From positions 62,001 to 126,000 of IMG/VR virus record IMGVR_UViG_3300020438_000007: a stretch of 64,000 nucleotides of DNA. One strand, 5' to 3'. The translations under genes were made by a program, and so were the position numbers. The notes below the pieces were generated by a model, which had not been told where the DNA came from, ran no database searches, and saw nothing but the letters and a program-made list of their open reading frames with translations. This document shows positions 2,457 to 64,000 of this stretch, one piece after another (position 1 is the first letter of the stretch; each line of letters opens with the position of its first letter).

Positions 2457-2610
2457 ACTCTCCTTTTCTAGCTAAATATACTTTAACATTATTATAATGC
2501 TTTTCTATACTTTGTGCAAACCAATTTGCTGGATCTCTTGATTCAAAAACTTTCATCTGTGATTCAGAAAATATGCCGTTGTCTGTCCAACATACAATGT
2601 AACGTGTCAT
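2446..2610 (-). CDS. 54-aa hypothetical protein (not in ORF track)
   Basis: Hand translation MTRYIVCWTDNGIFSESQMKVFESRDPANWFAQSIEKHYNNVKVYLARKGEFDD; ATGA overlap with gp43 stop; fills the gap exactly. Confidence 0.7.
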   Translation of the reverse strand: MTRYIVCWTDNGIFSESQMKVFESRDPANWFAQSIEKHYNNVKVYLARKGEFDD

Positions 2611-5111
2611 GCGAAGAAGGATTCAAGTGTATTCTTACGTTCGGTCTCCCAACCGATACAATCTAGAATAACCTTTACAGGTTCTAGGAATGATTTGCTA
2701 AATTGCAATTCATAGTCTACATGTTTATCTAGGTCGAGTTCAGTTGGGAAATCTTGAATGAAAGATATAACATTTTCGTGCATCCAATTAGGTGTCTTCA
2801 AGTAACAGAACTTGATCTTCTCACCATTATTAATCGCGGCATACTTATTGTCTATCCCCTTCTTCTTTGTATAGTGATTGTATAGGATGGCACCACGAAC
2901 ATGAATAGGACAACCCTTGTTATACATGTCAGAAGATGACTTCCACTTCTCCACGTTGGATACACTACGAGGGAATGCCACTTCTTCTGGTGGTAATGAT
3001 TTGAATTTAGTTCGACACTCCTCAATATAATCAATCACTTCATCCTCTGTTCCATTCATCAGTAAAGTAAAAGCATCTTTCAAGAACTTACGACATGGTG
3101 CAGGCGTAGAAGTTTTGATTGCTTCAATACCCATGATCTTAAGTTTAGCATCTTCATATCTAACTCCCTCACTATCCCATACGTTTAGAATATATCTTTT
3201 CTTTGCAGTCCATATACCAGTTGAAGCGATGTTCTCTCGCTTCATGATCATCTTTTGGTCGTAGGCGTTAACGTAGTCTGCCAGTTCTTGGTAAGAACTT
3301 TCAATATAAGGTTCAAGTTCCATCTCACAGACTTTATTAAGGAACGTGACAATGCCTTCAGTAGTTTTCTCTCTCCCCTCGTATACACGGTCAACCAAAG
3401 GACCCATATGCAAGTAAATAGAATCGGTATCACTAGCAATAACATAATCAATATCTTTTGTTTTTAAAATGGTATTCATCTTCTGGTTTATTTTATTCTC
3501 AATCCATCGGATTGATACTTGTCCAGATAGGGTAATGGCTTCTGCGTTCGCAAGTTTATAATAGCGAAAGTATTGATTACCAATAGCACCATAAGCACTG
3601 TTAAGGGCAATCTTCTTGGACATTTGGACGTTGTTGCATCTTGCAATCTCCTTTTCAAGTTCTTTAGTAGGGGTTTTTTCATAGGCTTGTTTTGCTTTGA
3701 TCATCCTCTTCTTGAAGATGACACGTTCATTATACATCTTCTCCATCAACTCAGGTAGGAAACCTTTCTTGTCCTTACTAAACATTGCACCGTTGGCACA
3801 AACTGCATATTCCTTATACATCTCAAAAGTAATCTCTTGATTGAGAAGTTTATCCACTGTGGCACTAGGATGTCTCTTTTCCTGTAATGTTTCTGGGGAG
3901 ATATTGTATTGCATAATCAAATGCGGATACAGTGAGTTCAAGTCAAAAGATACCACCCATTCATATCTACCAGGCTTAGGTTCTTTGACATACGCACCAG
4001 CATATTTCTCATCTTTCTTGTTACGATCCTTCTGTGGGATCACAATGTTTTTCTTTTTGAGATAGTTGTAGATGATCGCATCCCATGTACGAACTTGAAA
4101 CGCAACATCAGTAAAGTTGATCTTTGCATCATATGCTCGAGTACAACATAGGTCAATCAACTTGAGTTTATCCTCAAGACGGTCAACCAGTTCCACGTCA
4201 ACGATGTTGTAATCTACAAACTTCTGCCAGTTCTTTGTATAGAACTCACGGAATGTATCAAACTCACTGTGATCCAACTTCTTTTGACCGAGTTCCACCA
4301 TGGCAATATGATCCAATTTGAAACTCTCTTGGTTTGAAGTTGCAGGAGATTTCTTGTATAGATCCAAGTAATCAATTACAGATACGCCTGCAATATCAAA
4401 GACGATATTTGCACGACCCATTATTGTGATTTCATTCTTTCTTACAATGCCCCAAGGAGAGAACTTCTTGGCCACCTTCTCACCCATGAGACGTTCTACC
4501 CTACCCACAAGGTAAGGGATATCATACAGTTCACAGTTCCACCCTGTAATGACCTCAGGCGTGTGTTTCTGCCACCAGTCTAGGAATGTATAGATCAGAC
4601 CTTCCTCGTTGTGGCAGTCAATGTAAGAGTAGTTCTTTCTGTTTGGATTGGTCTGGTATGGACGTGATCCAAAGGTAGTAATTCTTTTAGTATTGTAATC
4701 CTGTATTGTGATCAGTAGAAGTTCTTCTGCAACATTAAAGACATCAGGGAAACCACTCTCCGCAGCAACCTCGATGTCAATAGTAACTAGATTAATTTTG
4801 CTTAGATCAAACTTGATATCATCCTCTGGATAATTATCAGAGATATATTGATGTACATATCTCTCATTACCAAAAATATTAAAGTTTTGTACTTGCGAAT
4901 ACTTGTCGATAAACTGCCTACAATCCTTGATTGTGCCAGGTTTGATCGGCTCTACAGATTGACCGTCAAGAGTCTTCCACTTACTTCTTTTCTTTGTAGG
5001 TACATAAAAGGTAGGATGAAACTCCTCCCTGTCACTAAAATGTTTTCCATTTTCATATCCCCTGACCAACATACTGTTGCCGATCTGGAAAACATTAGTG
5101 TAGAATTTCAT
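2607..5111 (-). CDS. gp43: Family B DNA polymerase gp43
   Basis: DIEV exonuclease motif, SFDLNSLYP, KIALNSAYG, SDTDS; 834 aa with no visible intein. Confidence 0.98.
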   Translation of the reverse strand: MKFYTNVFQIGNSMLVRGYENGKHFSDREEFHPTFYVPTKKRSKWKTLDGQSVEPIKPGTIKDCRQFIDKYSQVQNFNIFGNERYVHQYISDNYPEDDIKFDLSKINLVTIDIEVAAESGFPDVFNVAEELLLITIQDYNTKRITTFGSRPYQTNPNRKNYSYIDCHNEEGLIYTFLDWWQKHTPEVITGWNCELYDIPYLVGRVERLMGEKVAKKFSPWGIVRKNEITIMGRANIVFDIAGVSVIDYLDLYKKSPATSNQESFKLDHIAMVELGQKKLDHSEFDTFREFYTKNWQKFVDYNIVDVELVDRLEDKLKLIDLCCTRAYDAKINFTDVAFQVRTWDAIIYNYLKKKNIVIPQKDRNKKDEKYAGAYVKEPKPGRYEWVVSFDLNSLYPHLIMQYNISPETLQEKRHPSATVDKLLNQEITFEMYKEYAVCANGAMFSKDKKGFLPELMEKMYNERVIFKKRMIKAKQAYEKTPTKELEKEIARCNNVQMSKKIALNSAYGAIGNQYFRYYKLANAEAITLSGQVSIRWIENKINQKMNTILKTKDIDYVIASDTDSIYLHMGPLVDRVYEGREKTTEGIVTFLNKVCEMELEPYIESSYQELADYVNAYDQKMIMKRENIASTGIWTAKKRYILNVWDSEGVRYEDAKLKIMGIEAIKTSTPAPCRKFLKDAFTLLMNGTEDEVIDYIEECRTKFKSLPPEEVAFPRSVSNVEKWKSSSDMYNKGCPIHVRGAILYNHYTKKKGIDNKYAAINNGEKIKFCYLKTPNWMHENVISFIQDFPTELDLDKHVDYELQFSKSFLEPVKVILDCIGWETERKNTLESFFA

Positions 5112-5691: not shown

Positions 5692-5762
5692 AGCGGATGG
5701 GTGGTATTGCACCACCGTTTACAAGTTGGAAACCTGTCGTAATACTTTTATACGACACCCGC
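5692..5762 (-). tRNA. tRNA-Gly(UCC) with non-canonical D- and T-loops
   Basis: Folds as GCGGGTG/CATCCGC acceptor stem, GTA/TAC D-stem, ACAGG-TTTCCAA-CTTGT anticodon arm, GGTGG-TGCAATA-CCACC T-arm; U73 discriminator; no encoded CCA. Confidence 0.85.
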
Positions 5763-5764
5763 AT

Positions 5765-6000
5765 GAAAGACCATCTGCCCGACTCTCTTGAGTTGCATCT
5801 TAGGTCTTGAAAGAAAGAGGGGAGGTTGGGTTCCTGTGTACCAACAAAGAATGGGCATTACTACAGAGTAAATACATTCTTGCCTGAGACCCGACTGGTA
5901 AGTCGATTCTGCTTTCGCAGCAGCACCACCTGTGTCTCATCACCTTAACCAGCAGTATGCCAGTAAGTTTATTCAGTCACTCCCAATGTTGCGTCCAACA
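5765..6000 (-). ncRNA. Structured cyanophage ncRNA, manA/CfrI-like
   Basis: ORF-free; GGGAG(5984-5980)/CTCCC(5824-5820) closing stem; hairpins TGTTG-GACG-CAACA and GCTGC-GAAA-GCAG; own sigma70 promoter. Family name is from memory, not a search. Confidence 0.6.
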
Positions 6001-7951: not shown

Positions 7952-8413
7952 TCAGTCTGCCTTGACGAACGTGCTTTGTGAGGATTGTACTACCTTTTTC
8001 TTCTTACCAATATTATACTTAGTTTCTAAAGTCCAGTCTCCTTTATCCTTATAAGAAAGAACTTTGATTTGATTCAAAGGAGCAACATCTACAATTTGTT
8101 CTGGTCTGAGAATAGTAATCAATCCCCAATCTGATAGCAGAGTGATGATTCTATTCCTACGTTGAACATCATTGATAGAAAGATTAGCGGACTTTCCATC
8201 CAATGCAAACAATTCTTTGAAATGAACGATATAGTATCTACCTTGTTTGTGCAGAATATGGCACGATTGATAAATCTTTTTTTCTTTGCGTGAAGCAACA
8301 CCGATTCTCGTCAGAGTTTCTCTTACCTTTAGGAAATCATCTGGTTCGTTAAGTGTGACTTCGATCATTTGATCTTGTGACCAAGCAATCTCAGGTTCTG
8401 TAAACCCACTCAT
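7952..8413 (-). CDS. regA: Translational repressor RegA
   Basis: DDFLKVRETLTRIGVAS, QSCHILHKQGRYYIVHFKELF. Confidence 0.95.
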   Translation of the reverse strand: MSGFTEPEIAWSQDQMIEVTLNEPDDFLKVRETLTRIGVASRKEKKIYQSCHILHKQGRYYIVHFKELFALDGKSANLSINDVQRRNRIITLLSDWGLITILRPEQIVDVAPLNQIKVLSYKDKGDWTLETKYNIGKKKKVVQSSQSTFVKAD

Positions 8414-8790
8414 CCTGTACCTCCAACGTCAATGCGTTCTTTAATAAAATTCAACTGCTCTTTGGTTAAGATTTTCAACGCTTGCATTGCTTTATCATTA
8501 CTATAACCATAGTATTGTTTCACAACGTCAAGATCTTTGATCTTATCTTTGCGGAGCCAAGGAGAGAATCTCTTCTTCTTCCTGATGCTATTTAGATAAA
8601 AGTGATATTGAAGATCCTTTGATAGGTGATGATTGATATTCATTTCATTAGCAAACATAATACAATCAGTATGTGCTGACATACATTTGTTCACAATGAA
8701 TGGTGGATACTTCTTGATCGCTTCGGGGTCATCCTTCGTAAGATCCTGTTTGGTGAGGTTTACAGAGTTCAACCAGTCTTTTAGTTCCAT
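8410..8790 (-). CDS. gp62: Clamp loader small subunit gp62
   Basis: YPPFIVNKCMS, QYHFYLNSIRKKKRFSPW, YYGYSNDKA; position between gp44 and regA. Confidence 0.92.
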   Translation of the reverse strand: MELKDWLNSVNLTKQDLTKDDPEAIKKYPPFIVNKCMSAHTDCIMFANEMNINHHLSKDLQYHFYLNSIRKKKRFSPWLRKDKIKDLDVVKQYYGYSNDKAMQALKILTKEQLNFIKERIDVGGTG

Positions 8791-8972
8791 TCTTTTTTCA
8801 CTTTAAAGTACATTTTATAGTATCGTCCTTTCATTTCTTCAAGGACTTTCATGTCATCACCAAATCCCATATACTTGAGATTTTGATATGTTCCCTCAAG
8901 GTCACTAATAAGCAACAAAATATTAACGGGAGATATCTCTCTGCCACCGTACTGATATTCTTCAGGTGTCAT
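8781..8972 (-). CDS. Hypothetical protein
   Basis: 63-aa ORF packed between neighbours. Confidence 0.55.
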   Translation of the reverse strand: MTPEEYQYGGREISPVNILLLISDLEGTYQNLKYMGFGDDMKVLEEMKGRYYKMYFKVKKEWN

Positions 8973-8975
8973 TAG

Positions 8976-10118
8976 TCATCGTATGATATCAATCTCGTCA
9001 GGGTTTTTGTTCCAAGTTTCCAACTTGGTTCTTAGTCTTCCGTCTTCTCTGAGCGCTTCGTAGCGACGAGAAGCTTTTTTTCTCCACCAAGAAACAATCT
9101 GATCAACAGAGAATCTATCATAGTTTTCAGCTTTAACCAAAGTATCTTGCTCTCCCAAGATAACTTCTCTAGCATTCTTGAAACCATAGGTAGACATATA
9201 GAAACGTTTCTGTTCAGTTAGATCCTTGGCAGATTTAATCGCAGTGTTGAATGATTCTAGTTTATCTCTATCCTGTAAGGACTTTTTGATAACAGAAATC
9301 ATCTTTGTCTGGATCTTTAGTTTTCTACTAGAGGCATCTTCCTTTACTAAACATTTATTATTATTCCTTGCTATAAACCATTTGTTCAATTCTTGGAATA
9401 TAGAGTCATGTAACAGTGGGGTAAAGTCACTAACAGTCAAACCCTTGTATCTCATGTATGGTTTCAGTCCATCATACTGTGATGATGATTTAGTAGATCC
9501 ATACAATGAAGTAGTTTCAAACAAACAAATATCTGTATTATATTTTGCATTAAGTTCTTCTCTTGCTTGATGAGAACAACATAACATTGCTAAGAGTTTG
9601 CCACCAAGGTAGTTAAAACCAAATGGTTGAGTAGGTACAATGATGAAACCCATGATTGCATGGCGGTTAAACCGACCCAAATCAGGTACATCACCCAACC
9701 AATCATTCCTTGGTTTAGAATTGATGGTGGGAGAACCGAACCTTATGAATCCGATAACCTTCCCTGTGTTCTCTTCTTTAACAATCCACTTGAGTGATTT
9801 GCCTGGGATACAACTTTCAAAAGCATGAGACATTGTGATCTGCAATCTTTCATTGAAGAACTCATTAGTCAATCCACCAGGCTGGCCAGCACTATAAATT
9901 TTAATCCTCATGTCAGAAGGGTGCATATCAAACTTGCCGAAGAGATCATCCTCAGTTGCACCACCACCCCCATCAAAGAACGCTGATAGATCAGAGGGTT
10001 GCTGTGCTATCCTATCTAATTTTACATTACGAAGATATTCATCGATCCTTCCTGTATTAGAAAAGTAATCAATAAATTTATCTGCTGCGTATACAGCTTC
10101 ACTTTCAGTTAATATCAT
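8976..10118 (-). CDS. DUF4338/Mom-like GNAT-fold protein
   Basis: GFIRFGSP, VPTQPFGFNYLGGKLLA, FETTSLYG..SSQYDGL..YMRYKGLT resemble recalled DUF4338/Mom-type motifs. Confidence 0.55.
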   Translation of the reverse strand: MILTESEAVYAADKFIDYFSNTGRIDEYLRNVKLDRIAQQPSDLSAFFDGGGGATEDDLFGKFDMHPSDMRIKIYSAGQPGGLTNEFFNERLQITMSHAFESCIPGKSLKWIVKEENTGKVIGFIRFGSPTINSKPRNDWLGDVPDLGRFNRHAIMGFIIVPTQPFGFNYLGGKLLAMLCCSHQAREELNAKYNTDICLFETTSLYGSTKSSSQYDGLKPYMRYKGLTVSDFTPLLHDSIFQELNKWFIARNNNKCLVKEDASSRKLKIQTKMISVIKKSLQDRDKLESFNTAIKSAKDLTEQKRFYMSTYGFKNAREVILGEQDTLVKAENYDRFSVDQIVSWWRKKASRRYEALREDGRLRTKLETWNKNPDEIDIIR

Positions 10119-10356
10119 CGATCATATAATCAGTCATGGGAGGAGGTGGAACTAAAGGTGCATAGTATCCTCTGGGTGAAATTGGTACTTGCAACATGTC
10201 AATGGTTTCCTCAAACCATCTGTTCATTGATCTTGCCATTTTATTGTATGAGGTTCCAACAAAGAGTTGGCCTACAAGTACAGATGTTGTTGCAGTTCCC
10301 CAGAACAGATAGTAGAATTTGCTTTTAACTTGATGTCGTACTTTTTTCTTAGTCAT
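10105..10356 (-). CDS. Hypothetical membrane protein (start MTKKK)
   Basis: Basic N-terminus followed by a hydrophobic helix; the track's upstream extension overlaps the next gene. Confidence 0.55.
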   Translation of the reverse strand: MTKKKVRHQVKSKFYYLFWGTATTSVLVGQLFVGTSYNKMARSMNRWFEETIDMLQVPISPRGYYAPLVPPPPMTDYMIDDIN

Positions 10357-10573
10357 TTGATAACTCCAGATAAAATTTAGTTTGATCTGTTGGTGCGTTC
10401 TCATAGAATGAGATATCACCATAAGTTTTGTGGTCTTTGTATCCAACCATACGACCTTTCGTATTTTGGATTGCTCCCATCATAGCAATGATCAGGAAGA
10501 CTGTAGGTGGTCCAATGATAAGGGCACCTCCAATCACATAGTAAGTCAGTAGTTCGATTAAATCTGTAGTCAT
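10349..10573 (-). CDS. Small membrane protein
   Basis: TM segment YYVIGGALIIGPPTVFLIIAMMG. Confidence 0.6.
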   Translation of the reverse strand: MTTDLIELLTYYVIGGALIIGPPTVFLIIAMMGAIQNTKGRMVGYKDHKTYGDISFYENAPTDQTKFYLELSND

Positions 10574-11517
10574 TTGAATTCACACTCCACCATAATTTCT
10601 GTTAGACATGCTAACAGGTTAATTTCTTGATCTGCTACGAACGCGATCTGATACTGATACTTAGCAATAATGAGCACAGCAGCAGCAATACTAGGACCTT
10701 CAAGGGACTCAAAAAGAGCATCGTAGATACGACGCAATAGTACAGAAGGATCATTATCCAAGTTATTGACAGCCCACTTACGAACCTCTTTAAAGTTCTT
10801 ACCTTTAAGATTTTTGATAAGGTCATTTATGTTTACCTCAGAAAAACTGGCAAGAATAGATGAATCAATCCTACCACTTGTAGAATGTCGTTGACACTCA
10901 TTAAGAACACGTCTCCAGTCAGGGAAGTGCTTATTAATAAGTTCTACTAGTACCTTGTTATCATATTCAACACCTTCTGTAACCAAGATTTGTTGGAGAC
11001 GTTTGAAGAATTGGGCTGCAATTCCCTGTCTGTCTTTTCCCTTAATTCCGAACTCGACCACTGCACATCTGGAGTGGAGAGGTTCGATGATTCTATTCTT
11101 GAAGTTACAGGTGAAGATGAATCTACAGTTCTTATAAAATGCCTCAATATTCGCCCGTAAGAGGAGTTGTACATCATGGGTTGTGTTGTCAGCCTCGTCA
11201 ATAATGATGACTTTGTGCTTTGCATCCATCCCTTGAAGTGATACGGTCGAAGCAAAGTTCTTTGCTTGATTCCGTACCGTGTCAAGAAATCGTCCTTCAT
11301 CGGACCCATTGATGACATAACAATCAACTCCTAGTTCTGCACATAACGCTTTTGCAACTGTAGTCTTACCAACGCCAGGAGGTCCTGACAACAAAAGATT
11401 GGGAATCTCTCCCTTCTTTAGAAACTCTTTGAATGTTTTCTTTGTACTCTCTGGGAGAATACATTCATCAATAGTTTTTGGGCGATACTTCTCTACCCAA
11501 ATAAATTCATCCCTCAT
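10570..11517 (-). CDS. gp44: Clamp loader large subunit gp44
   Basis: WVEKYRP, GPPGVGKT, IIDEAD, LHSRC (RFC family). Confidence 0.97.
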   Translation of the reverse strand: MRDEFIWVEKYRPKTIDECILPESTKKTFKEFLKKGEIPNLLLSGPPGVGKTTVAKALCAELGVDCYVINGSDEGRFLDTVRNQAKNFASTVSLQGMDAKHKVIIIDEADNTTHDVQLLLRANIEAFYKNCRFIFTCNFKNRIIEPLHSRCAVVEFGIKGKDRQGIAAQFFKRLQQILVTEGVEYDNKVLVELINKHFPDWRRVLNECQRHSTSGRIDSSILASFSEVNINDLIKNLKGKNFKEVRKWAVNNLDNDPSVLLRRIYDALFESLEGPSIAAAVLIIAKYQYQIAFVADQEINLLACLTEIMVECEFK

Positions 11518-13142: not shown

Positions 13143-13310
13143 CTAAGCTCTTTTTCTTTTTTGCTTAATTGAAATTACGGATATAATTGCTGCGGTTGCA
13201 AAAACAACTGCGGCTGACGCAAGAAGATTTGTGGGATCAAATAATACGTCGGGTTGTGCTTCCCAAGTGCCTGGCAGTGTGTAGACACTTGGATGTGATG
13301 CAAATAACAT
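13143..13310 (-). CDS. 55-aa C-terminal-TM micro-protein (not in ORF track)
   Basis: Hand translation MLFASHPSVYTLPGTWEAQPDVLFDPTNLLASAAVVFATAAIISVISIKQKRKRA; TAATG overlap with gp45. Confidence 0.65.
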   Translation of the reverse strand: MLFASHPSVYTLPGTWEAQPDVLFDPTNLLASAAVVFATAAIISVISIKQKRKRA

Positions 13311-13985
13311 TAGTCCTCCCATGTGAGATCTGGTTCCAAAGCTATATAGTAGGTGAGGTCATACTCAGATGAGGTAAACTGTGACAAAAGTTTACGAGAG
13401 ATCTTGACATCATATGTGCCTGGAACAATCTTAATGTTTTCTACCTTGAAGTGTAATCCAAAAGTATTAGTAGTTTCTCCTACAACGATAGAGAAATCAT
13501 TTGATGTATCGTTCTTACGATCAGAAACAACCATCTTGATTTCTTTACCATCACCCACAACGGAAAGATCTGTTAGATGGTAGACCGCTGCAGCCTTTAG
13601 AAGACGATCAAGTTGAGAACTCTTGAGAGGGAACTCAACATCTACAGATGGAAGAGTGATTGATTTATCAGGAGGAGAGACAATAACACTTGGATCAGCA
13701 AAGAAATACTTAGACTTCTGTTTACCTTCTTTGATATTGACGAAACTTTGTCCTGTAAAGTTTAATTCTGGATCTTGAAAAAGACCAAGAGAGTTCAAGA
13801 ACTGACTAAGATCATAAACACCAAACTCTTGAGGAATGTCTTCATCAATATTTGCCTCTGCAAGAATGTTTTTCATTACAGAAATAGTTCTCAAGGACTT
13901 ACCTTGCTTGAATAAGATAGACTGATTGATAGAAGCAAAGTTCTTCAACAGGTTAATAGTTCTATCGGAAAGTTTCATAGGAATC

Positions 13986-14002
<17 letters not shown>
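13310..14002 (-). CDS. gp45: Sliding clamp gp45
   Basis: LKNFASINQSI, FGVYDLSQFL, YYIALE; upstream of gp44. Confidence 0.96.
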
Positions 14003-61108: not shown

Positions 61109-64000
61109 TTAGATTATGACAACATAAGTTCTACCTTCTTCGATGACCGCATACTCTGTTTCGGCATTACCAAAGGTGTTAACTTGACCAATTCCAACGT
61201 AAGTTGCCCGAGCGAGAGATTCCTTAGATCCAGCAAGTCCTTTGAATCTTCCTTGACTCTCGTACCCAGCAAAGGTAAAGGATTCGACAGCTGATCCACT
61301 TGTCTGGTAAAGAACTGCAACACCAATACCAATCGAAGGTGTGAAATCGACAAATGGGTGTACAAGAGGTGTATTGGAGAATGTAAATGTTCCAGATGTG
61401 CCTGGATCTTTGTCGTCTCCGTAGTATCCAAATACTTGGATTTGTTTTGTAGCACCAACACCAGAGATTGTAGTAATGCCAGATGTGCCTGGATCTCTGT
61501 CGTCTCCATAGTATCCGTAAACCTGATTGATTTCGGTAAGTGCAGATGCACCCTTGAGATCGAAGAGGACTGTGCCTTCCAGATCGTCCGCTGTAAATCT
61601 GACAATAGATGAACCAGAGAAGGTAGCAGTACCAACACCAATTTCTCTGAAGAATCCTTGTTCTCTTGCACTTCCAGAGAATGTAACAATACCAGAACCA
61701 GTGAAAGCTGGAGTGTAATCGATGTCTGGATGTGTAAGTTCTCCAGATAATGTGAATGTACCAGATGGAACGAAGTCTTGGAATACTTGGAAGTATCTTG
61801 TTTCTGCAACACCTGTGATATCTGTAAGAATTGATCTTGCAGCAGATGGTTCGACGGTTGCCTCTGCAGCACCACCAAGAATACTGAATGTACCAGAACC
61901 TGTTGGAGACAGTCTGATACCAGTAACAACTCTTTGATCGTTGCTGAGTGTAAGAGTTCCAGATCCGTTGAACTGGCGTTGACGGAAGGCAACACTTTCT
62001 CCAGACAGTGTAATTGTTGCAGTATCTTCTGGAGTCTGAGCAGAGAAGGATTCTTCTGCCGTTCCGTTGAATATAGAAGTTCCAGCGACAAGTTCTGCAG
62101 CAGCTGTTGCTTCTGCAATACCACCAACTGCGAATAGAGAACCAGAACCAACTTCGACGGATGATGTTGCTTCGTCTTGACCAGAACCACTGTAAGTAAA
62201 TGTGCCGCCGCCAGATGCTTGAACAGATGTTCTCTCGATTGTGAGAATACCACCTTCCTGACGAATAGTGATACCACCAGATGTGCCTGGATCTTTGTCG
62301 TCTCCATAGTATCCAAATACAGAAATTGGTCTTGCTTCTGCACCAGATGTCTGGAAGTCGAATAGGAGAGATCCAGCACCAAATTCTGTTGCAGGGATAA
62401 ATCTCTCTTTTGCACCAAACTCAACACCGTTAAGATCGCCAATTCCATCATCACCAATTTGACCATTGGCCTCAGTACCAATACCGAGAATGTAGATCGT
62501 ACCATCAGTAAGAATAGGAGCGTTGGTACGACCGATTGCCTTACCGTTAAGACTGATAATACCAGAGGTAGGATATTTGGGTACGAACCTTGTGGTAACA
62601 ATGCCAGGATCTCCGTACTCTCCTCCAGTACCGCCAGGCAAGAAGGTAAAACCTGTTTCGATACCAATGTTCCTTTCGATACCATAATGAGGTGTGAAGT
62701 CGATTTGTGGGTGATTGAGTTCTCCACTGAGTCGTAGAGTTGCCTTCTGAGATTGAGAAGCAAAGGCTGCACTGAGATCTGTATATCCACCACCAAAGAT
62801 GTGTAGGTAAGTTCCTTCTGGAGGATCGAAGCTCGATCTCTCGATAGATGCTCCAGAGAATGTAGTAATACCAGAAGCGGGTGGAACGATAATCCTTCTG
62901 TAGGTTGTAAACCCAACAGCTTGAGTTTGTTGAAGGGTGATATTTCCAGATCCAACAAAGTCTTTGGTGACACTCTCGTTTGCAGTATCGTAGATATCGA
63001 ATAGAACAGTTCCTTCTGGAGTCTGAGCAATGTATCTTTCTTCTGCACCACTAACGAAGTCGAATAGAGATGTTGTACTACTTGCAACTGCAACTCTCTC
63101 GACTCCAGTACCAGATACGATAAGTGAACCAGAACCAACCCAACTTGGGATGAACTGAGTAATCGTGTCCGAGATCTGTGGGAATACAAGTTTTCCGTAT
63201 GGGAAACGAGATTCTGTTGGTGCTGGCTCTGTAATGAATCCAGCATCTTCGTAACCCTGATTGATTTCTTGTGAATTGAAACCAGTGTAGTGTGGATATA
63301 AGAATTGATCGTATGCAGGTCCGCCAACAGAACTGATGCCAAGTTCACCGTAGTCTTGAGACACAGTGTTGTCATCAAATCCGATACCATATTGACTAGT
63401 CTTATCGAAGGAAGGTAATATCTCAACACCACCAGATCCTTGGTCGTATGTGAGACCACCGTTACTAAAGAGAACGTCTTGAGAGTATCTGTTGAGTTCG
63501 TCATCAAATGTTTCAGTACCAGAAGCCTGTCCAAGTATGTTGAGTCCGAATCCAAAGCTTGGGTCTCCAAGAATACCACCGTAGTTTTCGTTCTCAGTAC
63601 CAAAGAGTATAGAAGACTCATTGTAAGAATCTGTATTCTTCTCACCAGATGCCGCACCATTGACGAATAATGTTCCGCCAAACTCGTTTTCTTTGTGTTG
63701 TATAACTCTTGCGTATGTCTGATTCTCTTCTCTACCCTGACTGAAGGTTCCTGTACCAACACCAGAGATATGTGGTGCAAATACCTGACCAGCAGTACCA
63801 CCAAGATATGAGTAGTCTCCCTGTAAGTATGCCTTGGTACTGGATTCAACTGCACCACCGATACTGAATAATGTACCAGATCCTTCTGGTATGACTGGTG
63901 TAATAGACTCGTTACCAGTACCATTAATTGTAAATTGACCTTCTTCACCAAATACTGTATGTTGTGGAGCCTGTGATAACCATAGTTCTCCAGATATGAA
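61109..64000 (-). CDS. Giant Gly/Ser/Thr-rich virion structural protein, 5'-truncated by the window (>964 aa)
   Basis: Hand translation shows the frame of 61109..63364 continues without a stop to 64000 (FISGELWLSQAP...); repeated GSG-T(F/L) and GYYGDD.DPGTSG motifs. Confidence 0.85.
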   Translation of the reverse strand, partial: FISGELWLSQAPQHTVFGEEGQFTINGTGNESITPVIPEGSGTLFSIGGAVESSTKAYLQGDYSYLGGTAGQVFAPHISGVGTGTFSQGREENQTYARVIQHKENEFGGTLFVNGAASGEKNTDSYNESSILFGTENENYGGILGDPSFGFGLNILGQASGTETFDDELNRYSQDVLFSNGGLTYDQGSGGVEILPSFDKTSQYGIGFDDNTVSQDYGELGISSVGGPAYDQFLYPHYTGFNSQEINQGYEDAGFITEPAPTESRFPYGKLVFPQISDTITQFIPSWVGSGSLIVSGTGVERVAVASSTTSLFDFVSGAEERYIAQTPEGTVLFDIYDTANESVTKDFVGSGNITLQQTQAVGFTTYRRIIVPPASGITTFSGASIERSSFDPPEGTYLHIFGGGYTDLSAAFASQSQKATLRLSGELNHPQIDFTPHYGIERNIGIETGFTFLPGGTGGEYGDPGIVTTRFVPKYPTSGIISLNGKAIGRTNAPILTDGTIYILGIGTEANGQIGDDGIGDLNGVEFGAKERFIPATEFGAGSLLFDFQTSGAEARPISVFGYYGDDKDPGTSGGITIRQEGGILTIERTSVQASGGGTFTYSGSGQDEATSSVEVGSGSLFAVGGIAEATAAAELVAGTSIFNGTAEESFSAQTPEDTATITLSGESVAFRQRQFNGSGTLTLSNDQRVVTGIRLSPTGSGTFSILGGAAEATVEPSAARSILTDITGVAETRYFQVFQDFVPSGTFTLSGELTHPDIDYTPAFTGSGIVTFSGSAREQGFFREIGVGTATFSGSSIVRFTADDLEGTVLFDLKGASALTEINQVYGYYGDDRDPGTSGITTISGVGATKQIQVFGYYGDDKDPGTSGTFTFSNTPLVHPFVDFTPSIGIGVAVLYQTSGSAVESFTFAGYESQGRFKGLAGSKESLARATYVGIGQVNTFGNAETEYAVIEEGRTYVVII
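61392..62320. repeat. Three ~44-bp near-identical direct repeats (61392-61435, 61479-61522, 62277-62320)
   Basis: ccagatgtgcctggatctYtgtcgtctccRtagtatcc..; copies 1 and 3 are identical at 43/44 positions; encode GYYGDD(K/R)DPGTSG. Confidence 0.85.

Follow-up and report, generated by a model that had tools for sequence, protein, structure and literature searches.

The window analysed here, a stretch of 64,000 nucleotides (positions 62,001 to 126,000 of the IMG/VR virus record IMGVR_UViG_3300020438_000007), carries a 380-amino-acid gene of the DruA family between the clamp-loader genes gp44 and gp62, and an atypical tRNA-Gly(UCC) lies in the same replication module. An earlier interpretation made from the letters alone (the sequence-only reading) had joined the two into an undescribed base-modification system, in which an enzyme resembling the Mom protein of phage Mu would use the tRNA as its dedicated glycyl donor. 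Assignment to the DruA family, a GNAT fold and the biochemistry attributed to Mom were all upheld, whereas membership of the Mom family and the dedicated-donor link were not, and the evidence does not demonstrate that gene and tRNA form a Mom-like DNA-modification pair. The interpretation that we tentatively prefer, at somewhat below an even chance, is that the protein is a coenzyme A (CoA)-type GNAT marking replicating DNA or another nucleic-acid-associated target as a counter-defence, and that the tRNA is an unusual decoder.

A phage member of the DruA family with a predicted GNAT fold

The gene and its conserved segments are the following.
8976..10118, minus strand: DruA-family (PF14236, formerly DUF4338) GNAT-fold gene, 380 amino acids, ATG start, stop included
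9129..9923, minus strand: predicted GNAT core with helical insertions, residues ~66-330 (structural matches span model residues 66-331)
9597..9629, minus strand: near-invariant loop Q164-P-F-G167...G172-G173-K174, between strand 154-162 and helix 172-180
9474..9518, minus strand: conserved segment E201-T-T-S-L-Y-G...S213-x-Y215, after strand 199-203 (63-member alignment)
8979..8990, minus strand: extreme C-terminus D-I-I-R, a hydrophobic-hydrophobic-Arg end found family-wide

The open reading frame (ORF) was confirmed between gp44 and gp62, with two small ORFs intervening and the same arrangement in Synechococcus phage S-SSM7, and both motifs quoted in the sequence-only reading were present in its translation. 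The resemblance to DUF4338/DruA proposed there was borne out by Pfam, in which PF14236 scored 42.4 bits (cut-off 27; E 6.3e-11), protein residues 103-204 aligning with positions 78-180 of the 297-position profile. The homologues in Mosig and HTVC008M likewise matched PF14236. The DruA models of PADLOC gave weak matches, and phrog_19197 (PHROGs, function not assigned) was matched over its full length with an E value of 2e-203. The search of NCBIfam matched no family, and the family profile run against PDB sequences gave chance matches only (E>0.7). A word-index search returned 6,708 homologues, and an exhaustive profile search yielded 834 clusters at 50% identity. The ORF is a real, widely conserved gene and not a chance reading frame. 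RNA-library contigs matched the window exactly over 8178-10041; these are assembled contigs only, which attest presence and are not proof of transcription, ends or strand.

In the isolate collection the family occurred in 31 records, corresponding to ~17 distinct phages, against a backdrop of ~470 cyanophage and pelagiphage records with a related gp43. All were marine T4-like phages, namely cyanophages and the SAR11 phages HTVC008M and Mosig. HTVC008M has two DruA-family paralogues (NC_020484 86143-87255 and 99535-100659), a Mosig-type and a window-type copy, which flank its replication module and tRNA. DruA-like proteins in six Synechococcus phages were reported in the Phold preprint, DUF4338 was described as a GNAT domain by Aravind's group (PMC10853773), and a GenBank record labels the S-SCSM2R orthologue ‘methylcarbamoylase mom’. 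As a phage variant, the gene belongs to a family that is known but uncharacterised, and the resemblance had been noticed previously.

The GNAT fold was supported by an AlphaFold2 model and by its Foldseek matches. A first model built from 40 close homologues reached a pLDDT score (predicted local distance difference test) of only 52.9 and was discarded; the diverse alignment from the exhaustive profile search (63 sequences, 21-91% identity) was used instead and gave a pLDDT of 90.9 and a predicted template-modelling score (pTM) of 0.86. Since the predicted fold is that of a GNAT, the objection that the protein lacks such a fold fails. The Foldseek matches were CoA-dependent GNATs (malonyl-CoA decarboxylase, a tandem GNAT, p300, PCAF), and nearly all of the top structural matches were protein or small-molecule N-acetyltransferases, including NatA, Naa50, Naa60, RimI, PCAF, p300 and phosphinothricin acetyltransferase. 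By language-model features, the nearest named cluster was PF22559 (GNAT-phage-like). In the ESM Atlas, one DruA cluster matched with a template-modelling (TM) score of 0.92 over 367 aligned residues and a second with a TM score of 0.81. The latter comprises 235 largely viral proteins in which DruA is fused to ParB_N, an architecture also found in protein P0259 (L307:114-1919); the contigs that carry this fusion and a 736-amino-acid relative are short, and their gene context was uninformative. In BFVD, the best matches were uncharacterised giant-virus proteins and a Mom protein ranked ninth (E 2.5e-3). Structural relatives also occur in Klosneuvirus-like giant viruses (Faunusvirus, Yasminevirus, Dasosvirus).

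The strongest conservation falls in the loop and the segment listed above. Q164, G167, G172, G173 and K174 were conserved in at least 90% of the 63 diverse family members, T202-T-S-L-x-G207, S213 and W345 were further conserved residues, and Y215 was the sole fully invariant one. GNATs bind the CoA pyrophosphate at the β4-α3 loop through an established Q/R-x-x-G-x-G/A motif. Judged by the order of secondary-structure elements in the model, the Q164...K174 loop probably occupies this position. On its N-terminal side the core has a helical hairpin of acidic composition (pI 4.1), and on its C-terminal side, in the last third of the protein, a basic helical region (pI 9.7). The hydrophobic-hydrophobic-Arg terminus was kept down to ~25% identity, including the Mosig, HTVC008M and L110 homologues and longer relatives, and this conservation suggests a functional role for the free C-terminus. 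D-I-I-R was also considered as a sliding-clamp-binding tail, which was rejected because the same ending is kept in distant, non-T4-like members.

The sequence-only reading had drawn a motif parallel with Mom, and none was found. PF25680 (Mom) was not matched in Pfam at E<=1, and hhalign comparisons of the family alignment gave probabilities of 0.25% against Mu Mom and 0.14% against a 33-member Mom alignment. Judged by sequence, the protein is not a member of the Mom family. At the level of the model, the Mom structure was one of ~50 tied GNAT matches, with model residues 66-323 placed on Mom residues 20-232 without a residue-level alignment. This predicted likeness to Mom is one of superfamily, no better than that to ordinary acetyltransferases. 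The use of Gly-tRNAGly attributed to Mom itself was correct: Silva et al. (Nat Commun 2026, PMC13219725) reported that Mom moves glycine from Gly-tRNAGly to adenine N6 in double-stranded DNA, with R111, S124, D149, R151 and a helix-turn-helix (HTH)-like insertion (residues 175-209) as essentials. For comparison with that insertion, the model has a helical insertion formed by helices 238-298.

An atypical tRNA-Gly class and its association with the gene

The tRNAs discussed below are located as follows.
5692..5762, minus strand: atypical tRNA-Gly(UCC) of the window (Rfam tRNA, 51.3 bits)
L179:1606-1676 (NC_020484 91140-91210): tRNA-Gly(ACC) of HTVC008M
L001:7782-7852: tRNA-Gly(ACC) of Mosig, annotated as the hypothetical coding sequence Mosig_000011
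L252:17489-17560 and L293:21153-21224: tRNA-Gly(GCC) with the coupled loop change; GG/UUC relative at L296:11104-11175
G000:C1:229717-230029, minus strand: cluster of four tRNAs in the same record, outside the window

The non-canonical tRNA-Gly(UCC) that had been placed ~3.2 kb from the gene is real; 3,214 nt separate it from the gene's last base, on the downstream side. ARAGORN called no tRNA anywhere in the window, which is explained by the non-canonical build, and the Rfam tRNA model (RF00005, cut-off 29 bits) recovered it. The 71-nt molecule has the acceptor stem GCGGGUG/CAUCCGC, U73 and the anticodon UCC, and CCA is not encoded. Its D-loop is AAAAGUA, without GG, and its T-loop is UGCAAUA, with G55 in place of Psi55 and without T-Psi-C. 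Compared with the bacterial set (PMC7826273), the identity elements for glycyl-tRNA synthetase (GlyRS) are complete: G1-C72, C2-G71, G3-C70, U73, C35 and C36. The cloverleaf was supported by covariation in 27 distinct relatives, with 94.9% of cells paired, two-sided changes at 16 of the 21 pairs, and no shuffle among 500 scoring as high.

The exact 17-nt D-arm was found in 98 IMG/VR contigs, all but four of which hold glycine tRNAs with the anticodon UCC or the unusual ACC; the other four comprise one Thr(UGU), one Gln(UUG) and two in which the 17-mer falls outside any tRNA. The Thr and Gln copies (L094:2148-2218 and L112:1290-1360) have the identical D-arm and a G55 T-loop and stand within ordinary phage tRNA arrays; the contig of L112, 209 kb long, holds 12 or more further tRNAs. 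The D-loop did not vary among the more than 45 distinct sequences from cyanophage and pelagiphage lineages. Some pelagiphage contigs carry a second tRNA-Gly, with anticodon GCC, in which a D-loop AG or GA is combined with the T-loop UGC, and a relative has GG with UUC. The coupling of these changes suggests that a compensated A18/G55 tertiary pair replaces G18/Psi55, with G19-C56 retained.

An A34 glycine anticodon is unusual in itself. The SAR11 myophages HTVC008M and Mosig each carry such a tRNA-Gly(ACC) of the same odd build, unannotated as a tRNA in both. HTVC008M was listed with 0 tRNAs in a tRNAscan-based census (PMC7029224) and the copy in Mosig bears a protein annotation, so tRNA censuses of marine-virome phages are incomplete. 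The A18/G55 tRNA-Gly is a genuine, overlooked structural class, of which a limited literature search found no description.

The association between gene and tRNA was then read across lineages. Because blastn with the window tRNA misses the canonical S-SSM7 tRNA, a covariance model was used for canonical copies. Where the flank was sufficient, the gene of window-like IMG/VR contigs lay at 3-6.4 kb on the upstream side of the tRNA (at least 15 loci), Mosig-type loci had the tRNA 4.7-7.9 kb downstream of the gene in 15 of 16 cases, and all 8 HTVC008M-type loci had it 7.3-8.4 kb upstream. The order gp43, DruA-like gene, tRNA was seen in a fourth lineage (L098, L110, L124), and in L110 the tRNA starts 58 nt past the stop of the gene. 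Melnitz, a relative of Mosig and HTVC008M, appeared neither in the 31 DruA-positive records nor among the atypical-tRNA matches, its genome not having been scanned singly.

The association is far from obligatory. Among 26 complete gene-to-gp43 intervals, 18 had no tRNA-Gly, four had the atypical form and four a canonical one, and the atypical tRNA was absent from 14 of the 17 gene-positive isolates. In S-SSM7, whose protein is 91% identical, a canonical tRNA-Gly(UCC) occupies the same site, and canonical relatives of this tRNA occur in the gene-negative phages S-CAM1 and S-SKS1. Conversely, contigs L101 (known by exact protein look-up from one 8.5-kb contig), L150 and L096 carry the atypical tRNA beside gp43, and the DruA-like gene is missing from its usual place. 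A further contig, L084, was dropped as an exception because it may be chimeric: a host-like smpB and a 790-amino-acid, gcvP-like glycine dehydrogenase gene stand directly upstream of gp62 (L084:3-2688), through either chimeric assembly or capture of host genes. The constant partner of the tRNA is gp43, not the GNAT gene; in window-like phages the tRNA always lies ~650 nt upstream of gp43. Since both features look like core synteny within the pelagiphages, the independent co-occurrences number only about two. The co-occurrence proposed in the sequence-only reading was found in isolates and in four lineages, but not at the 18 of 26 loci without tRNA-Gly nor in the three tRNA-only contigs. Its dedicated-donor system likewise kept an atypical tRNA-Gly in the same module and was weakened by those loci, by the canonical tRNA of S-SSM7 and by the CoA-type loop of the protein.

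A decoding role also accords with the rest of the genome. The other four tRNAs of the record (Leu-UAA, Arg-UCU, Thr-UGU and Ile-UAU) are canonical and all read A-ending codons, and GGA makes up 450 of the 1,312 glycine codons in the window (34%), GGT being the commonest. A sub-threshold tRNA-like match of 26.5 bits, not called by ARAGORN, was also seen at G000:C1:194429-194477 on the minus strand. Given the A-ending codons read by the other tRNAs, the share of GGA, the canonical copy in S-SSM7, the Thr and Gln versions in tRNA arrays and the loci lacking any tRNA-Gly, the tRNA-Gly(UCC) is best explained as a GGA/GGG-decoding tRNA in a replication-module hot spot and not as an obligatory glycyl donor.

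Possible functions of the DruA-like protein

In the mechanism that we tentatively prefer, the glycine-rich loop would bind acyl-CoA and an acyl group would pass from it to a target associated with nucleic acid, for which the N6 of adenine in freshly replicated phage DNA is the most plausible candidate. The protein would thus act as an ‘orphan’ modification enzyme that shields the phage genome from host defences, for which the orphan methyltransferases of phages provide a parallel. The gene lies among replication genes in every lineage, within the gp44-gp62 operon here and next to gp43 in pelagiphages. This context, together with the ParB_N fusions, the basic C-terminal region and a signal reported for Druantia type I, points towards DNA as the target. 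That signal is a PacBio ‘m6A’ (N6-methyladenine) call at CAGCTGNC, seen only in cells with Druantia type I, a system without a methylase domain (preprint 10.1101/2024.04.14.589459). Acylation of adenine N6 by DruA could produce such a signal.

Several observations weigh against this interpretation. The loop departs from the classic motif, with N at the last position (Q164-P-F-G167-F-N), and its β4-α3 assignment comes from element order and not from residue-level superposition. The DNA target rests on context, domain fusions and the indirect signal of one preprint. On the side of the tRNA, the atypical form was found among the ~470 marine T4-like isolate records only in Mosig and HTVC008M, both of which are DruA-positive; in four lineages and three arrangements a DruA-family gene stands close to it, once with the tRNA 58 nt downstream; its D-loop is invariant while its stems covary; its G55 T-loop mirrors that of staphylococcal non-ribosomal tRNAGly; and the glycine tRNA alone in this genome has the A18/G55 build. 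These five observations fit a functional link better than coincidence.

Most of them also speak for a Mom-like, tRNA-dependent aminoacyl-transferase acting on DNA, with the A18/G55 tRNA-Gly as a dedicated donor of poor ribosomal competence, as for FmhB/FemAB. Mom is a GNAT that uses Gly-tRNAGly on double-stranded DNA (PMC13219725), it was the best named phage match in BFVD, and its name stands in the GenBank label of the S-SCSM2R orthologue. The tRNA combines all GlyRS identity elements with a T-loop UGC and a D-loop lacking GG, like non-proteogenic tRNAGly, and it accompanies the gene at nearly all Mosig-type and HTVC008M-type loci. We nevertheless consider this explanation improbable. The protein has no sequence relation to Mom and its structural match is tied with generic GNATs; equivalents of Mom R111, S124, D149 and R151 were not identified, no residue-level superposition being at hand; and a CoA-type glycine-rich loop is kept at a place where such a loop is missing from the Mom family. 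A nearby tRNA-Gly is absent from most gene-positive phages, S-SSM7 has a canonical one at the same spot, the tRNA-only contigs break the pair from the other side, and the pelagiphage cases reduce to core synteny. In the staphylococcal tRNAs the T-stem has weak A-U pairs, whereas here it is rich in G-C. A tandem arrangement of GNAT domains that specifically matches the structure of Fem proteins (FemX, FemA) was not found in the protein. A broader version of the idea, to which we give a similarly small chance, is that the DruA-family GNATs (the phage copies and the DruA of Druantia type I) would form a second, Mom-independent lineage that acylates or aminoacylates DNA adenine and is the source of the ‘m6A’ signal, with the A18/G55 tRNA-Gly as a dedicated non-ribosomal donor recognised through its invariant D-loop.

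An acetyl-CoA-dependent protein N-acetyltransferase, directed at the phage replisome or at a host protein during host takeover and unrelated to the tRNA, is a less likely explanation than marking of nucleic acid but deserves more weight than the Mom-like one; the N-acetyltransferases that dominate the top structural matches, the conserved glycine-rich loop and the position in the clamp-loader operon all accord with it. The homology to a defence-system component, the six Synechococcus phages noted by the Phold authors and the frequency with which phages carry homologues of defence genes could instead point to a counter-defence decoy, a DruA copy that mimics or titrates components of Druantia type I-like systems without catalysis. 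This appears quite improbable: its neighbours are replication genes, not druB-E, and the near-invariance of catalytic-looking residues across phage and non-phage members argues for a retained enzymatic function. Least probable of all, with only a very slight chance, is an aminoacyl-tRNA acetyltransferase of the TacT/AtaT kind that blocks host Gly-tRNAGly while the phage tRNA-Gly(UCC), escaping through its altered elbow, sustains phage translation. This proposal is purely inferential, with no specific similarity to TacT or AtaT, and most gene-positive phages have no tRNA-Gly of their own. Furthermore, a UCC tRNA would have to serve all four glycine codons, since GGT is the commonest.

Genome setting and comparison with known systems

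The source of the window is a viral record of 230,739 bp, 99% complete, from a T4-like cyanomyovirus whose closest isolates are the Synechococcus phages S-SSM7 and S-SSM6a (90.8% identity to their orthologues for the DruA-like protein, 92.6% for gp43). On the minus strand the order is gp45, gp44, a 113-amino-acid ORF, the DruA-like gene, a 63-amino-acid ORF, gp62, regA and hsp20, followed by a 2-oxoglutarate-Fe(II) oxygenase gene, a 232-amino-acid ORF, the manA RNA, the tRNA, two small DUF6561 ORFs and gp43. The neighbouring features are as follows.
13310-14002, minus strand: gp45
10570..11517, minus strand: gp44, clamp-loader large subunit, upstream neighbour (ORF; S-SSM7 orthologue annotation; tblastn marker matches)
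10105-10446, minus strand: 113-amino-acid ORF between gp44 and the DruA-like gene
8781-8972, minus strand: 63-amino-acid ORF between the DruA-like gene and gp62
8410..8790, minus strand: gp62, clamp-loader small subunit, downstream neighbour (ORF; S-SSM7 annotation; Pfam Phage_clamp_A on the L310 orthologue)
5815..6000, minus strand: manA RNA motif, directly upstream of the tRNA (Rfam RF01745, 186.7 bits, cut-off 55.2)
2607..5111, minus strand: gp43 DNA polymerase (ORF; marker matches)

In the window the GNAT gene and gp62 are separated by a 185-nt gap that the 63-amino-acid ORF occupies, whereas in S-SSM7 they overlap and this ORF is lacking. In contig L101 a PNP_UDP_1-like gene (nucleoside phosphorylase/nucleosidase, 321-842) stands beside gp62 in the usual slot of the DruA-like gene. 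The manA RNA motif lies 52 nt upstream of the tRNA, and in S-SSM7 it directly abuts the canonical tRNA. The bin containing manA had by far the top summed contig depth in three RNA libraries. In many contigs of other phages the match to manA extends to 5766/5767 and is lost beyond it, 4-5 nt short of the tRNA 5' end, so that the tRNA resembles a cassette lying downstream of conserved manA.

DruA belongs to a widespread defence system and lacks a functional characterisation; its relatives in phages abound in the ocean, where metagenomes yield thousands of homologues. Were the family to modify DNA, GNATs would have a second way to hypermodified DNA beside that of Mom, the marking of self-DNA by the methylase-less Druantia type I would be explained, and dominant phages of cyanobacteria and SAR11 would bear an anti-restriction mark. 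The A18/G55 tRNA-Gly class, for its part, escapes standard tRNA finders, and because it parallels the staphylococcal cell-wall tRNAGly, a non-ribosomal role can be put to direct test.

Among known systems, Druantia type I DruA is the nearest to the protein. The two share the Pfam match, the predicted fold (the TM scores of 0.92 and 0.81 given above), the conserved loop and T-T-S-L-x-G...S-x-Y. They differ in that the present gene sits in the clamp-loader operon of a lytic T4-like phage, with gp44, a small ORF, gp62, regA and hsp20 as neighbours in place of druB-E, in that only profile positions 78-180 are matched, and in that the protein falls in a distinct phage subfamily of 370-380 amino acids (phrog_19197). 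Mom (phage Mu, PF25680) is a late gene under Com control encoding 241 amino acids, while the DruA-like gene belongs to the replisome operon and encodes 380, and neither sequence nor profile similarity connects them. The Mom family has no glycine-rich loop at the corresponding place, and the conservation of a CoA-type loop in the DruA family would favour an acyl-CoA donor.

The tRNA resembles the staphylococcal tRNAGly(UCC) that serves FmhB/FemA/FemB in its UCC anticodon, full GlyRS identity, T-loop TGC and D-loop without G18-G19. In the non-proteogenic staphylococcal tRNAGly genes, TGC or TGT replaces TTC in the T-loop (PMC7826273), and to this extent the parallel is real. In staphylococci, the D and T arms discriminate for a GNAT-fold transferase, and weak T-stem pairs (A49-U65, U50-A64, A51-U63) are held responsible for poor EF-Tu binding; the window tRNA instead has G-C, G-C (G-U in relatives) and U-A. 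It also differs in an elbow that looks compensated, with A18/G55 and G19-C56 kept, in its marine-phage lineage, and in that no Fem-type tandem-GNAT enzyme is present. With ordinary cyanophage tRNAs it shares an anticodon suited to an A-ending codon, and the canonical tRNA-Gly(UCC) of S-SSM7 holds the identical position. Unlike them, it was missed by ARAGORN, and its D-loop does not vary between cyanophage and pelagiphage lineages.

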